This document shows, piece by piece, positions 5,023 to 20,878 of a stretch of 64,000 bases of DNA. The first letter of the stretch is position 1, and each line of letters begins with the position of its first letter. This DNA comes from Dimorphilus gyrociliatus (taxonomy: Eukaryota; Animalia; Annelida). Position numbers and translations under genes: made by a program. Under the pieces are notes generated by a model. It had not been told where the DNA came from. It saw nothing but the letters and a program-made list of their open reading frames with translations, and made no database searches. The stretch is from the NCBI GenBank assembly GCA_904063045.1, contig CAJFCJ010000018.1, positions 372,001-436,000 of the forward strand, in the 5' to 3' direction.

Positions 5023-8000
5023 ATGAGTATCGAAAGCTCCATGGAGGGAGAAGAAAGTAAATTAGCAAAAAAGAAACCCGAAAAAGTCGAAGCGACTTCA
5101 ACCCAAAAAAATGGTAAGCATGAATTTTTTATAGCCAATCGAATAGATAGGAGAGAAAAAAGTTTATCTTTTATGCTGTTTAGAAAACGAATTAGCTGTT
5201 CGCCTATATCAAATTTCTCTGTAAAAACTATACTCCTGCATGTTTATAATGCAAAAAGCATACATTAAAGCTACAAATTTATTAGCTTATATGTATATAT
5301 TTAAAGCCAGGCGTGTGCTATGTATCAAATGAACGAAAAATACATAAAGAAGAGTTTATATTTTGTTGTATCAGTCTTTGAAGAATGTCTGTTTGTGATT
5401 TTGTGTCAAGAAATGCATATACACTATAAATTTGTGTGAGCAAGTAAATAGGGCTGAGAGATTTATGGAAACTAGGGATAGAAGAAGAGCAAGCAGAAGC
5501 GGATGATAATGTTTGTTTTACGTCGACAATCAATTTTCTCGAAATGCCTCATTCGATACTTTCATAGGACTATGTAGACAAGCACTTATATACCCGTGGT
5601 GCGACGTTTGGCCTTAGGGGACAAGGAGACATACGCTGATTAGTATTGGTTAAGACGTTTTGGAAGCGGACGCAGTTTACGCGTCCTGATTAGTAAATTT
5701 AATCGCAATACAAGCTACTAAAGTGTTTAAGTTGAAACGCACATTCAGTTTGAAAAATTTTCACCACCTGCGGCTTGATACTAAAACCCTAATCACAATC
5801 TTTTAGAGACGACATTTCGAGAAGCGTCGAAGCGTTGCTAAGCCCCTATAAAATTCATTCAAATTTCCTCATATCCGCAAGCCTCGGTAAACTGACCGAT
5901 GACCGCTCTCTTGACCATAAGTAGCTATCACCAATGCCACATTTAACGCCTTTTTTATTTCAAGTATCAGGCAGGTGTGGTGTGTCGATGGAGATTTATG
6001 GATATTTTAATTAAAATAATATGCTATCACTAAACTTTCCTGTGCTTTAGATTAATATGTTTACTTGAATTGATAACCACTTTGTACTGAACAAATGGAA
6101 TCTTAAATAGATAACAAGTGATATGAATAACTCTAATTTAGCTAGATCAATCTTGTTTTATGTCGCCAAACTATCGGCGTTCCTTGTCCGCTCAGTGGGC
6201 TTTATTACCATATCCAGCGTCTCCGCATACAGTGCCATCTATTGCATATCTATGAAAAAGTGTTAAATTATTTATTCTATTTATTTCAGATTTTTAAAAA
6301 TTATTCGAAGTAAAGCTTTGGGGAAAATTAGATATTTACTTTAACTTGGAAATTAATTATTATACCAATTGTTAGCTATTAATAATTAAAGAGTCTTTGC
6401 ATAGAGAGTTGCTTTAGACTTATCAGCTTCTATAAACCAGATAGGAGCTCAAAAAATCTTTGAGGGAATGCTAATGAACTTAACGATGCAGTCATGTCAC
6501 CTAATGACCCTCAGCAGGGGGTATATTGTCATTCGAGCGTAAAATGCAGTGATTGGTTGCAGTACAAATGAAAAATTGCACATTCTCCATCAGTGACAAA
6601 GTAGTATTTTGATTAATTGTTGACCGAAAACAACACCTTTACATTCATCTCTGTTAATTCCACTTTAAAAGTGCTCTTTATCGTATAGCAGCGTACTTTG
6701 AAAAAGCAAGATGATATATAATAGGCTTAAGTGTAGATTTTAGAACGCGGAGAAAAGCCAGTCTATGAGAAATGGTGCCAGACTAGGCACTTTGAATGAA
6801 AACTATCTGCACGCTGTCTGTAAAGTACACAGGCAGAGTGCGAGCTGGTGAGGTCTGTTTCTGTTCTCGTTATTCTCAACAAGTAAGTAGCAGTATTAGA
6901 TGCATTGTTTTTTTTTAATAATTATAAGACTAGATTAACAAGAGTTGTTGAATTCCGCTATTTCTGATACGAACAATTTATACAACAAGCATTATAATTG
7001 GGAAAATTTAAATAATATGTATTGTGTAGATGGATAATCTATAAAGGGATTCAAACTTCAAAATTTTTACGAAAGAAATGTCAGATATCTAGTAAGACAT
7101 TATTTGTTATTTCCCTTGCCGAACAATGATGAGTAAACAGTATTGTTTATTGGAAAACAAGTAATAATATACTGATCGGCGTGCAGAGGCCTCCACCTAA
7201 CATTTACCCTTCACAAAAGAACGTAAAGATGTTATTGTCTGCCTTTTGGAGGGCGATATTTTACTATTAAATAATTTTTACTGGACAAAAAATCTGCTTA
7301 CAATTCGATATTTTAAACATAAATAAGTGTATAAGTTTTAAGGTCAATCAGTCGAGATATTAGGCTGTAAAAATGTCTGTTGTACACGTAAGCATTGAAA
7401 TCGCCTATTCCGAAGACATATTTACTCACAGTGTAATTCTATAATAACCTGACAAATCCGTCAACAAAATAGGCCTGAATGGTCTATGTTTACTTAAGAA
7501 TTTTTGTGTTTATTTTGAAAATACCCTATAATTTTTTTCTAGCAAGATTTATGGCGCGTACCGAACTCTATAAAGAACGTCTGTAAACAATTAATGAATG
7601 GCTAAACCGGCTTTTGCATTTTTCTTACAGAATCTTTGGCCAAAAAAGCTCGTAAAAACTCACCGAGCAAGGAGGAATCATCAAAAGTTTTTCAAATACC
7701 ACCTCCTGGTGCACCACTTGCCTTTTTCCCCTTTCATCCTCAAGACCTTGGTCGGTACCCTTTCCTGGATCCGGCATCCTACGCAAGTGAGCATATATTT
7801 TCTTTACTGCTTCCAGACTTGTTTACTTTACACTTTATAAACTTTTCATGTTCATATCCCGCTGGTCTATCGATAGAGATAGGATCTCAGTCATTCATGG
7901 AGCTTTATACATAATTATTCGTTTGTCTAGGTGCGGCTTTCATCAATTCATCTCCAGTTCCCCTCAACTCAAATCTACCGACAACAACAACGGGTGTTCA

Positions 8001-17517: not shown

Positions 17518-18627
17518 TTTTGTCAATGTACCACACCTTTTCCAACTGCAAAATGTAAAGTCTCAAATTGTAAATACCAGAATTCTATGCGAGATGTCGT
17601 TGTCTGTATGTAATAAGCGTGCAGATCATATATAGAAGTTGCGCGTATGTAAAAGCCACGCCTCATCAACATATAGTATCGATTTTCTATAATTTTATAT
17701 ATTTTCATCGTAATATTTTTTGATAATTCCAACAGCAAACACAAACGAATATAAGGACAAGAATTAACTTAGCATAAAACATATCCCTAATGTTATGAAG
17801 AAAATCAACAGCTCTATGCATGTGAAGTTTATTCATAGCTATATAGGAATAATATACAAGTACAACAGCTAGATAATTATTGTTATTACCTTAAAATCAA
17901 GAAGCAAATCTGAGCAATTAAAGAATGTGAATATATATTACAAATTGTTAAATTAACCCACCTTAATATGATGTTATATTAATCGTCCATATTCCAAAAA
18001 TAATAGCTCAATGTCTGTCCAAAAATTTGCATCAACTTATAACTAAGCAAAACTACGAAATCAACTGCACTGGCTACATAAAACATACACCCTTAACGTA
18101 CCTCTTTTGCGAAAGATTTCACATTCACCCACGCTTTTTTTCTTCTTTAATCAACCAGATGGAGTGATTGTTTTTAATGTAGATAATCGTTTTTTATGCT
18201 ATGCAAAATTGTAATTGGCTCTTAATCGTTCCCTGCAAAAATAATTTACTGGGCGTATGACTTGAACAATTACGGAAATAAGTGTTATTATATAAGTCAT
18301 TGATCTTTGCCGAAGACTTATTTTTTATTTTATTTAACGACAGTTACAGAATGTTAAATATGATATTTTTGATGTAAAACATCCACAGTGGTATTAGAAA
18401 AATCAGTAGCGCGCAGATATGATAAACCAGTTACTGCACATAATGTCGAAATATTTTAGGCATCACAGAATATATCAACTACTAGAATAAACAAAAATAA
18501 GACCAATTCATTTCTCAGTCTCAGTATGTACAATTCCTATTAAAAAAGGCCTCAATCATTATATGCAGGTCGTTGAACAATTTCTGATGTAGTGATTATA
18601 TCACTTCCAGGAGACAGTTTTTAAGTT

Positions 18628-20878
18628 TTAAGCTATCGTACACGAACATTTGCAGTTAGTCCCACAACAACAGCCTCTTTTGCGGGTATCATTTGATTGT
18701 GCGGGAGGAGTTACTGGAGCAAAGTAGGCATGTACAATCAGATTTGGCAATCTGTCCTGTAATTACCATTTGTGAGAAATTAAGGTGAAGTATTAATCTT
18801 TATCGTACCTGAGGGTCAGAGCAGCACGCAACAGCGACAGTACCGTCGTCTACTCGGACCGACAGAGGTTGGTGGAGTCATTGGAGCGAAGTACGCGTGA
18901 ACTATTATGTTTTCAAGGTGTGTCTGTTTCAACAACAAACTCTTTTTTTACCAGCGTGCTGCTCTAACTGCTCTGGTTCGCGTTTAACTAACCTTAAGCC
19001 TTCTTATTCCAGCTCTTGTTATCAGCTGACAATCATATAGCTCAATTCGCTTTAAACCTTGGCAAGCGTTTAAGTGATCTAAACTAGCATCAGTAATTAA
19101 AGGACAGTTATCTAGTTCTAGAACACTTAAATTCTCAGTGGCACACGGTCCGCTTCCCAGATGCCGAATTCCTTCGTCAGTAATCAGTTCACAATGAGAT
19201 AAACTCTGAAAGAGTAAAATGTATATATTAAGATTTAATTTTAAGATAATCCTGTATAAGACTAACTATCTGAGATAGCATTGGACATTGCATTGCTAAC
19301 TGAGCTAAAGTTGCGTCAGTTATTTGATTGCATTCTTCAAGGTCCATTCTTTCTAAGTTATGGCAATTCTGAAAAACTATTTGTTAGTTTTAAACTTTTT
19401 AGAAAAAATGGTTACTCTAGCTAGAGCTTGAAAGCCGTTGTCTGTAAAGTGTGTACACTCTGCAACTTCTAGTGTCTTCAAGTCATGACATCCTTCTCCT
19501 AGTCTTACCAAAGTAGCGTCTGTTAATTGCGAACAACCAGATACACATAAAGTTTTTAACTGTCGGCAATAGGTACTGATATGCTCAATAGCAACATCAG
19601 TAATCTGCAAACAAAGTAGTGAATTATTTTTACCCATAAATATTTTTTATATACCCGGCAGTTTCTCAAGTTAATTAGTTGTAAATTTTTGCAGCCCCGT
19701 GATAGCTTTTCAATTCCTTCATCGGTTACATTTGTACAACCTTTTGCTAAAACATGTGCTAGGTCTTTGCATCCTTGTCCAATCGAATGTAATCCTTCAT
19801 CTGTGATATTGACACACCAGGATATGTTAAGGTGTATCAAATGAGGACAACCAGTTCCTATTGAGATTAGGGATTGATTTGTTATTTCAATACAGGATTC
19901 AAGATTTAGATTGGCCAAACGAACGCAGTACTGGCCAAGATGTCTACTAGTTCTAAAAAAATAAATTAATGAAATAGAATACTTTTACAAATAAAAGAAG
20001 TACAGACTCATCTGATATCTGTTTGCAATCTTTCAAATTTAAAATTTCAATACTACGGCATGATTTCGCAAAAGTGCTGCAACACGAGCAAATATCGATC
20101 AGAACATAATTTGAAAACCAAAAAAAACCTTACACCAAAGCTGCATCTGTTACATGTTTGCAACCACATAAACCAAGGGATTTTAAAAATCCACCACATC
20201 GATGAGCTATGTGCTCCACAATTCGACCTTCGATTGCTACTTGAAAATTAAATAAATCCACTCTCTGCCAGTTGCTTCCATCTAAAGCCAACATATTCCA
20301 ATACTGTTTGCAAACATAAGTAAGTCAATCGCAATTTTAAAACTATATTTCACCTTTGATACTTGTGCACATCTGCATAGTGCCACAACATCAAGGAAAG
20401 AAAATATTCTGAAAAGCCAAAATTAGTATTTGATGGTTATATACTACATAATTTACCTCAACAATAATTCTTTTGGTAATTTCTTATTGATATGACCTTC
20501 TTCCGGAGTTGACGTCGTTGGAATATCAATGCAATTCGTCTACAAATTATGGATATTGATTACTTAAAATTTGAAGCCTTTCGATGACATAAATCATGCA
20601 ATATTAAGTTGTTCACTGTTGCAAAACAACAATCTGAAATAGAAATCTTAGAAATCTAAGCGTCACAGAAATGACATACCACAATCATACTCTGGTAATT
20701 CAAATCGACGTCGGGCTAGTTAAAGAGAAACGAAGAGAAATTTTACTACCGATGGACAAACAAAGGAAGGCAAACTCAAATGGGCTTCGAAGATAAAATG
20801 TAATTTTATACGCACCTCTGACTTGGCTCTAGAGTAGGCATAGCCATTGTAATTACCTCCGTGATTATGATTGTTCAT
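18628..20878 (-). CDS. FBXL20: F-box/LRR protein of the FBXL2/FBXL20 family with C-terminal CAAX
   Basis: ATG at 20878 (MNNHNHGGNYNGYAYSRAKSE), F-box HINKKLPKELLLR|IFSFLDVVALCRCAQV and LRRs (LNLESCIEITNQSL, LEVAECTHFTDNGF, LELDNCPLITDASL, YDCQLITRAGIRRLK). Two alternative terminal coding exons both contain VHAYFAP.TPP. Co-orthologous to FBXL2 and FBXL20. Confidence 0.94.
18809..18923 (-). CDS. FBXL2/20 alternative terminal coding exon A (ends ...SRRRYCRCCVLL*)
   Basis: Acceptor GAAACAG| at 18924, phase-0 ORF THLENIIVHAYFAPMTPPTSVGPSRRRYCRCCVLL, TGA at 18818-18816 and donor CAG|GTACG 7 nt later. A 52-nt intron then leads to exon B (18756-18628: DRLPNLIVHAYFAPVTPPAQSNDTRKRGCCCGTNCKCSCTIA*). 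Confidence 0.88.
18815..18968. repeat. 15-bp inverted repeat (pre-mRNA stem) bracketing FBXL exon A
   Basis: On the transcript, intronic GUUAGAGCAGCACGC (18968-18954) is complementary to exonic GCGUGCUGCUCUGAC (18829-18815): 14 Watson-Crick pairs plus one G-U. Confidence 0.85.

Follow-up and report, generated by a model that had tools for sequence, protein, structure and literature searches.

A long-range RNA helix probably helps to decide which of two lipid-anchor tails is given to an FBXL2/20-type F-box/LRR protein encoded in the window, the whole 64,000-nt stretch of Dimorphilus gyrociliatus DNA that was analysed here. The last coding exons of the gene are a tandem pair of paralogues, A (CVLL) and B (CTIA, or CTIS in a close relative), and the end of exon A is predicted to pair with the middle of the intron upstream of it. 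We consider it reasonably probable that this helix represses exon A, the ancestral one of the pair, and steers splicing towards exon B, a direction that we infer. Alternative splicing controlled by RNA structure is already known as a class of mechanism in flies and humans, and the FBXL2/20 instance is new. Its standout features are that CaaX-plus-stop coding sequence serves as one arm of the helix and that an E3-ligase adaptor is switched from one type of lipid anchor to another.

Gene structure and alternative last coding exons

RNA contigs placed the 3' end of the gene on the minus strand of 18300-19700. The exon map (Table 1) was based on RNA contigs from four public marine runs compared with 1,401 nt of the locus; these contigs belong to a third lineage that is not the window's own strain, and their exons are about 5-8% off the window. 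Assignment to FBXL2/FBXL20 followed from LRR exons together with a C-terminal ...HAYFAP...RYCRCC-CaaX tail, where the tails align, and the 71-aa exon is 77-87% identical to proteins named 'F-box/LRR-repeat protein 2/20' in their sources.

Table 1. Features of the 3' end of the FBXL2/20-type gene, in window positions
Feature	Positions	Strand	Basis
Exon	19696-19655	-	RNA contigs
Exon	19604-19416	-	RNA contigs
Exon	19368-19267	-	RNA contigs
Last constitutive LRR exon, 71 codons; donor joined to either the A or the B acceptor	18993-19205	-	RNA contigs
Conserved intron block: donor GTTAGT, 5' helix segments, A-run	18943-18992	-	47/50 identical to L001
Intron, last constitutive exon to exon A, 69 nt, GC 0.42	18924-18992	-	RNA joint 18993>18923, run X1
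Helix extension, 5' side: GAG (18973-71), ACC (18977-75), CG (18980-79)	18971-18980	-	pair probabilities 0.94-0.99
Core helix, 5' arm GTTAGAGCAGCACGC, middle of the 69-nt intron	18954-18968	-	pairing; 15/15 identical in L001
Exon A, cassette, ...RRRYCRCCVLL-stop, ancestral CaaX tail type	18809-18923	-	both joints in one 173-nt contig
Core helix, 3' arm GCGTGCTGCTCTGAC: C-V-L-L codons, TGA (18818-16), one further base	18815-18829	-	pairing
Helix extension, 3' side: CUC (18813-11), GGU (18809-07), CG (18805-04)	18804-18813	-	predicted pairs; RNA joint 18809>18756
Intron, exon A to exon B, 52 nt	18757-18808	-	RNA joint 18809>18756
Exon B, coding part, exon A paralogue, ...GCCCGTNCKCSCTIA-stop (CTIA)	18628-18756	-	joint 18993>18756; translation

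The RNA-confirmed introns of this gene measure 47-69 nt, and a median intron length of 66 bp has been published for D. gyrociliatus (PMC7854359). The intron upstream of exon A was found to be one nucleotide longer than the 68 nt of the original prediction, since the RNA joints place it at 18992-18924. Its GC content is as unusual as that prediction had it (0.42 against 0.21-0.29 in the four other confirmed introns), overall GC content being 33%.

Both ways of joining exon A are represented in the RNA contigs. The two inclusion joints, 18993>18923 and 18809>18756, occur together in one 173-nt contig from run X1, and the skipping joint 18993>18756, which skips 236 nt, is present in contigs from runs X1, X4 and X5. 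Exon A is therefore a true cassette exon, and the two mRNA forms bear out the earlier proposal that exons A (CVLL) and B (CTIA) define alternative isoforms. With exon A included the protein ends in CVLL and exon B becomes 3' UTR, and with exon A skipped the protein ends in CTIA. The exon A stop codon (TGA, 18818-16) is followed by six exonic bases and then the GT donor, and exon B extends as 3' UTR to about 18344. In run X1 contig depth was approximately 51 for the skip form and approximately 29 for the inclusion form, and in X4 and X5 the skip form alone was assembled; the isoform evidence consists of assembled contigs, whose depth is a poor measure of abundance and gives no reliable ratios. 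At the end of the exon 19368-19267 (19267-19271, minus strand) the related-lineage RNA contigs read AATT where the window reads GATA, so that a shifted joint with non-canonical ends reported at this position reflects substitution and not non-canonical splicing.

A predicted stable helix between the intron and the end of exon A

The pairing of 18968-18954 with 18829-18815 was confirmed from the sequence as 15 consecutive pairs, of which 14 are Watson-Crick and one is G-U. Across small bulges the core is continued by GAG:CUC, ACC:GGU and CG:CG, giving 23 bp in total with a computed duplex energy of -38.6 kcal/mol, where GGU comprises the last base of exon A and the donor GU, and CG the donor positions +4 and +5. 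Pair probabilities were 0.98-1.0 for the core and 0.94-1.0 for the whole helix in a pre-mRNA context of approximately 640-646 nt at both 37 and 20 °C. Folding of 19000-18750, the check that had been suggested for the stem, recovered the core helix in both the minimum-energy and the centroid folds. This 251-nt segment folds only moderately better than its shuffles (z = -1.95); the signal lies in the specific helix and not in general foldedness.

The gene model from the RNA joints agrees with the predicted geometry, in which the loop encloses the exon A acceptor and the stem lies 5 nt from the donor, the five bases 18814-18810 standing outside the core stem between it and the last base of exon A. 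On its other side, the 5' arm is followed after 5 nt by a conserved A-run (18949-43), which is the probable branch region, 19-25 nt ahead of the acceptor of exon A. The arrangement is thus that of a loop-out pairing, with arms that bracket an exon and splice sites, a stable predicted helix and an enclosed exon that is alternatively spliced.

The chance rate was estimated from dinucleotide shuffles for perfect helices of at least 15 bp that contain no more than one G-U and span no more than 300 nt, and came to 0.25 helices per strand per 64 kb. Helices with at least nine G-C pairs numbered 0 in 40 shuffles. The real window holds two helices of the required length and purity, of which the CaaX-exon helix is the sole GC-rich one. 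Within 3 kb, the best partner of the intron arm is the end of exon A at -28.9 kcal/mol, with the next best at -15.5, and the end of exon A is the unique best partner over this distance in the window and in the close relative alike. A comparison with Rfam families returned nothing near threshold.

Conservation of the helix in a close relative

When the last constitutive exon was used as query in a word search, a single close relative with genomic DNA was retrieved, all other matches having at most 87% identity. Its contigs (Logan L001, L002 and L086) are mutually identical at the locus, and it is referred to here as L001. Nothing further was found with the exon B ORF as query for relatives, a metagenome scan for further relatives gave 80 loci of which none was close, and an ORF antisense to the gene in L001, used as query for relatives, matched itself only. 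The layout of L001 is the same as that of the window, and in L001 exon A ends in CVLL and exon B in CTIS.

Exons are 79-89% identical between the window and L001, and the four other confirmed introns are 42-52% identical, which is saturation, and keep no block of the kind found upstream of exon A; the intron between exons A and B is 52% identical. Against this intron background the 47/50 identity of the conserved block has a binomial P = 2e-12, and even against exon-level identity it has P = 0.03. The original prediction had named absence of the arm from a relative keeping both exons as grounds for abandoning it, and in L001 the arm is instead intact (15/15). Strong purifying selection thus acts on the intronic arm in a relative with both exons. 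The exon arm is doubly constrained besides pairing, since it codes for CVLL and the stop and adjoins the donor.

Three changes fall on the 3' strand of the helix in L001: a synonymous C>U at 18824 that turns a G-C pair into G-U, a C>U at 18814 that turns an A.C mismatch adjoining the core into A-U, and an A>C at 18803 that gives an extra G-C pair at the outer end. As these changes keep or add pairs, the duplex of L001 is stronger than that of the window, with an energy of -42.7 kcal/mol. The two-species RNAalifold consensus kept all 23 pairs, with a one-sided change in 1/23. The compensatory substitutions that had been proposed as a check on orthologues amounted to 0/23 pairs changed on both sides, in a comparison of two sequences only, and the evidence for the helix is consequently one of conservation and not of covariation.

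Other structures in the region fared less well. A conserved fold in the interior of exon A, together with base pairs between the upstream donor and the A-B intron, was suggested by pair-preserving changes in RNAalifold, and was rejected because the single-species folds disagree and most changes break the pairs of the other species. The supported structure is the 23-bp helix alone; the outermost AU-rich pairing of the upstream donor, which lies outside it, differs between the two species. A second partial arm that the original prediction placed just upstream in the same intron, CAGAGCAG, is indeed present (18975-18968). The alternative register that it was thought to allow is not conserved, as the sequence in L001 is CAGAGAAG and the C->A change weakens this register, and the GAG of CAGAGCAG fits better when read as lengthening the one helix than when read as offering another register.

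The comparison with Dscam docking and selector sites that accompanied the original prediction is not supported, as the arm has only one conserved partner. The exon B sequence CTAACTGC (18659-18652) is exactly complementary to GCAGTTAG (18964-18971, -), which overlaps the start of the intron arm, and it is the next-best site of the arm with a score of -31.7 in the window and -24.3 in L001. It was rejected as a second selector, being not conserved in L001 and never competing in the ensemble. This complementarity is probably due to chance, since both sides changed in L001 without compensation. An alternative donor, CTG|GTAAAA, which would make the conserved intron block exonic, was likewise rejected: the two species do not share the reading frames, that of the window meeting a stop at its third codon, and the donor is used by no RNA joint in the contigs.

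Further conserved stretches were observed along the transcript. Inside exon A, a run of approximately 53 nt (18844-18896, -) has 92% identity to L001 and includes long stretches in which no synonymous change has occurred, and the internal folds predicted for it differ between species. The 3' UTR after exon B is 81% identical to L001 as a whole, as high as the coding exons, and contains blocks of at least 90% identity at 18543-18609 and 18372-18472 (-), which on sequence conservation may be regulatory elements. A public gene call at L001:3184-3624, on the minus strand of the locus, describes a 146-aa ORF that runs antisense to both exons; stops interrupt it in the window, and it is thus almost certainly a gene-caller artefact on eukaryotic DNA.

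Distribution in other animals and origin of exon B

Across 120 protein matches and 84 loci from other animals each C-terminal exon recovered was of the exon A type (CVIL, CVLL or similar), and a second, exon B-like exon was absent from these same matches and loci. As the other animals sampled have a single exon of the A type, exon A is the ancestral one and exon B a lineage-specific duplicate. Exon B (window 18628-18923 (-) region; L001:3296-3586) was seen only in the window's lineage and in L001, and carries a cysteine-rich GCCCG.NCKCSC stretch, with CTIA in the window and CTIS in the relative. Under the usual CaaX rules a box with L in last place is geranylgeranylated, and one with A or S there is farnesylated. 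Exon B is a young duplicate that alters the predicted prenyl type. Human FBXL2 is geranylgeranylated, and is palmitoylated on cysteines next to the CaaX box (PMC9988375); our literature search found no paper on a farnesyl-type FBXL2 isoform.

Genomic loci that have only one CaaX exon, 23 in number, were compared in the same way: their upstream introns matched the exon ends no better than they matched shuffled tails, and no clean helix was found. A clean helix is accordingly seen only where the A/B choice exists. One of the loci with a single CaaX exon, L010, gave an apparently strong duplex that was rejected as a diffuse GC-rich interaction and not a clean stem, and it has no second CaaX exon downstream. 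In a more distant animal (L004), a second, degenerate copy of the last constitutive FBXL exon with 80% identity lies at 6848-7060, 2.8 kb downstream of the first. The same contig has an 845-aa reverse-transcriptase/PHD ORF at 405-2942, approximately 1.1 kb upstream of the first FBXL copy and approximately 3.9 kb upstream of the degenerate one.

Proposed mechanism and alternative explanations

In the mechanism that we propose, the two tails would differ in kind, exon A encoding a geranylgeranyl-type and exon B a farnesyl-type CaaX box, and the interrupted 23-bp helix with its 15-bp GC-rich core would join the middle of the intron to the last 15 nt of exon A and the donor. When formed, the helix would enclose exon A, together with its acceptor and the likely branch region, in a loop of approximately 125 nt, would leave the exon A donor partly paired, and would reduce the unpaired distance from the upstream donor to the exon B acceptor from 236 to 12 + 47 = 59 nt. 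Exon A would then be skipped in favour of direct splicing to exon B and the CTIA isoform, whereas the CVLL isoform would become available once the helix was opened or bypassed. The modelled loop, the partial pairing of the donor and the position of the arm adjoining the likely branch region fit repression of exon A. All three effects of the helix favour skipping, which agrees with the observation that looped-out exons are included less, the more so with more stable helices (PMC8052449). Conserved long-range intron pairings have also been found to modulate splicing in Drosophila (PMC2724269). A predicted helix probability near 1 does not on its own explain why exon A continues to be included in some transcripts. 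A broader suggestion, which we make tentatively and regard as possible but doubtful, is that the helix, beyond repressing exon A, is a structural shortcut in an animal with splicing geared to introns of approximately 50-70 nt, and brings the oversized 236-nt A-skipping intron to an effective length of approximately 59 nt, letting the new exon B be used at all and so creating the geranylgeranyl/farnesyl switch.

Several other explanations of the conserved block can be weighed against repression of exon A. The block could be a protein-binding splicing element, or reflect donor or branch constraint in a tiny intron, with its complementarity to the exon being incidental, and this would account for the block (18992-18943) reaching past the paired bases into CTGGTAAAAAAA and the donor, for AGAGCAG being present twice and for the lack of any pair changed on both sides. 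We nevertheless judge it rather unlikely, because four other introns of the same gene keep no such block, because chance would very rarely give a conserved 15-mer a perfect partner at a distance of 125 nt, precisely where the alternative exon ends, and because all three 3'-strand changes are pair-friendly. Chance complementarity devoid of function draws on the scan having covered the whole window with 0.25 such helices expected per strand per 64 kb, but no GC-rich helix of this kind arose in 40 shuffles and the intron arm is conserved 15/15 where neutral intron sequence is saturated, which makes this a very improbable account.

A functional helix might also act in the opposite direction, promoting inclusion of exon A, or might only delay or order splicing, for instance by holding the exon A donor until the upstream intron has been removed. 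The conservation evidence is equally compatible with such an effect, and the substantial inclusion of exon A in X1 despite a very stable predicted helix would be in keeping with it. The acceptor and exon body are nevertheless in the loop, the arm is 5 nt from the A-run and the donor GU is paired, features that lower inclusion in published cases (PMC8052449), and each of the three runs covering the junction yielded the skip form; we therefore find an opposite or timing effect unlikely. Least probable of all, and given hardly any weight here, is an ADAR-type editing duplex in which the intronic complementary sequence would direct A-to-I editing at the end of exon A. Such a role is suggested by an exon-intron duplex of at least 23 bp that spans the stop codon and by the overlap of conserved long-range pairings with editing sites in human (PMC8052449). 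The only A of the exon arm lies in the UGA stop, and its conversion to UGG would cause read-through into exon B out of frame. A 5' G neighbour is the context least favoured by ADAR. The target A has just such a neighbour, the duplex is short for ADAR, and no T>C (plus strand) is listed at 18816 in the RNA contigs, which drop rare variants and include four differences that are not displayed.

If repression of exon A by the helix is true, the gene offers a compact and easily mutated case of RNA structure choosing between two lipid-anchor signals of a conserved E3-ligase adaptor, with all parts of the switch lying within 240 nt. Since the helix has a coding arm, a single 25-nt stretch specifies the RNA fold as well as the protein tail, the stop codon and the splice donor. 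The case also bears on how alternative splicing over longer distances takes place in genomes with very short introns.

Comparison with known systems

The FBXL2/20 helix is like the long-range pairings of Drosophila (Raker et al. 2009, PMC2724269) and human (Kalmykova et al. 2021, PMC8052449) in that conserved complementary boxes bracket an alternative exon, in that conservation is far above that of the surrounding intron, and in that lower inclusion of the looped exon is expected. It is unlike them in that one arm is exonic and coding, consisting of CaaX codons and stop where theirs are intronic, and in that its span is only approximately 125 nt in a genome with introns of 47-69 nt. The looped exon carries a stop codon and the choice consequently swaps the C-terminal lipid-anchor signal. 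As in exon 10 of tau (MAPT), the donor of a cassette exon is drawn into the pairing (here GGU and CG), which would limit U1 access and lower inclusion; the tau structure is a local hairpin at the junction, whereas the FBXL2/20 donor pairs with the upstream intron, so that the exon is enclosed in its entirety.

Dscam, 14-3-3zeta and Mhc use competing structures between docking sites and selectors. The FBXL2/20 gene shares with these systems tandem duplicated alternative exons and an intronic element that pairs near one of them, but it has a single conserved partner and thus falls outside the docking/selector type. Exons A and B are also not strictly mutually exclusive at the RNA level, since the A form contains B as 3' UTR. 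In yeast, intron structures reportedly shorten the effective distances between splice sites, in work attributed to Goguel and Rosbash in 1993 and to Meyer et al. in 2011. These distance-shortening helices lie within one constitutive intron. The FBXL2/20 helix is comparable in that bridging the 236-nt skip intron leaves approximately 59 unpaired nt, an ordinary intron size in this gene, and differs in that it would make an alternative and unusually long intron usable.

At the protein level, alternative C-terminal exons of KRAS4A/4B change lipid anchoring. Alternative C-terminal exons of CDC42 give a prenylated CVLL form and a palmitoylated brain form (PMC9868626). No RNA helix has been described in either case. 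Like CDC42 and KRAS4A/4B, the FBXL2/20 gene swaps the CaaX or lipidation signal of a membrane-targeted protein by means of alternative last coding exons, and unlike them it belongs to a family of SCF substrate adaptors.
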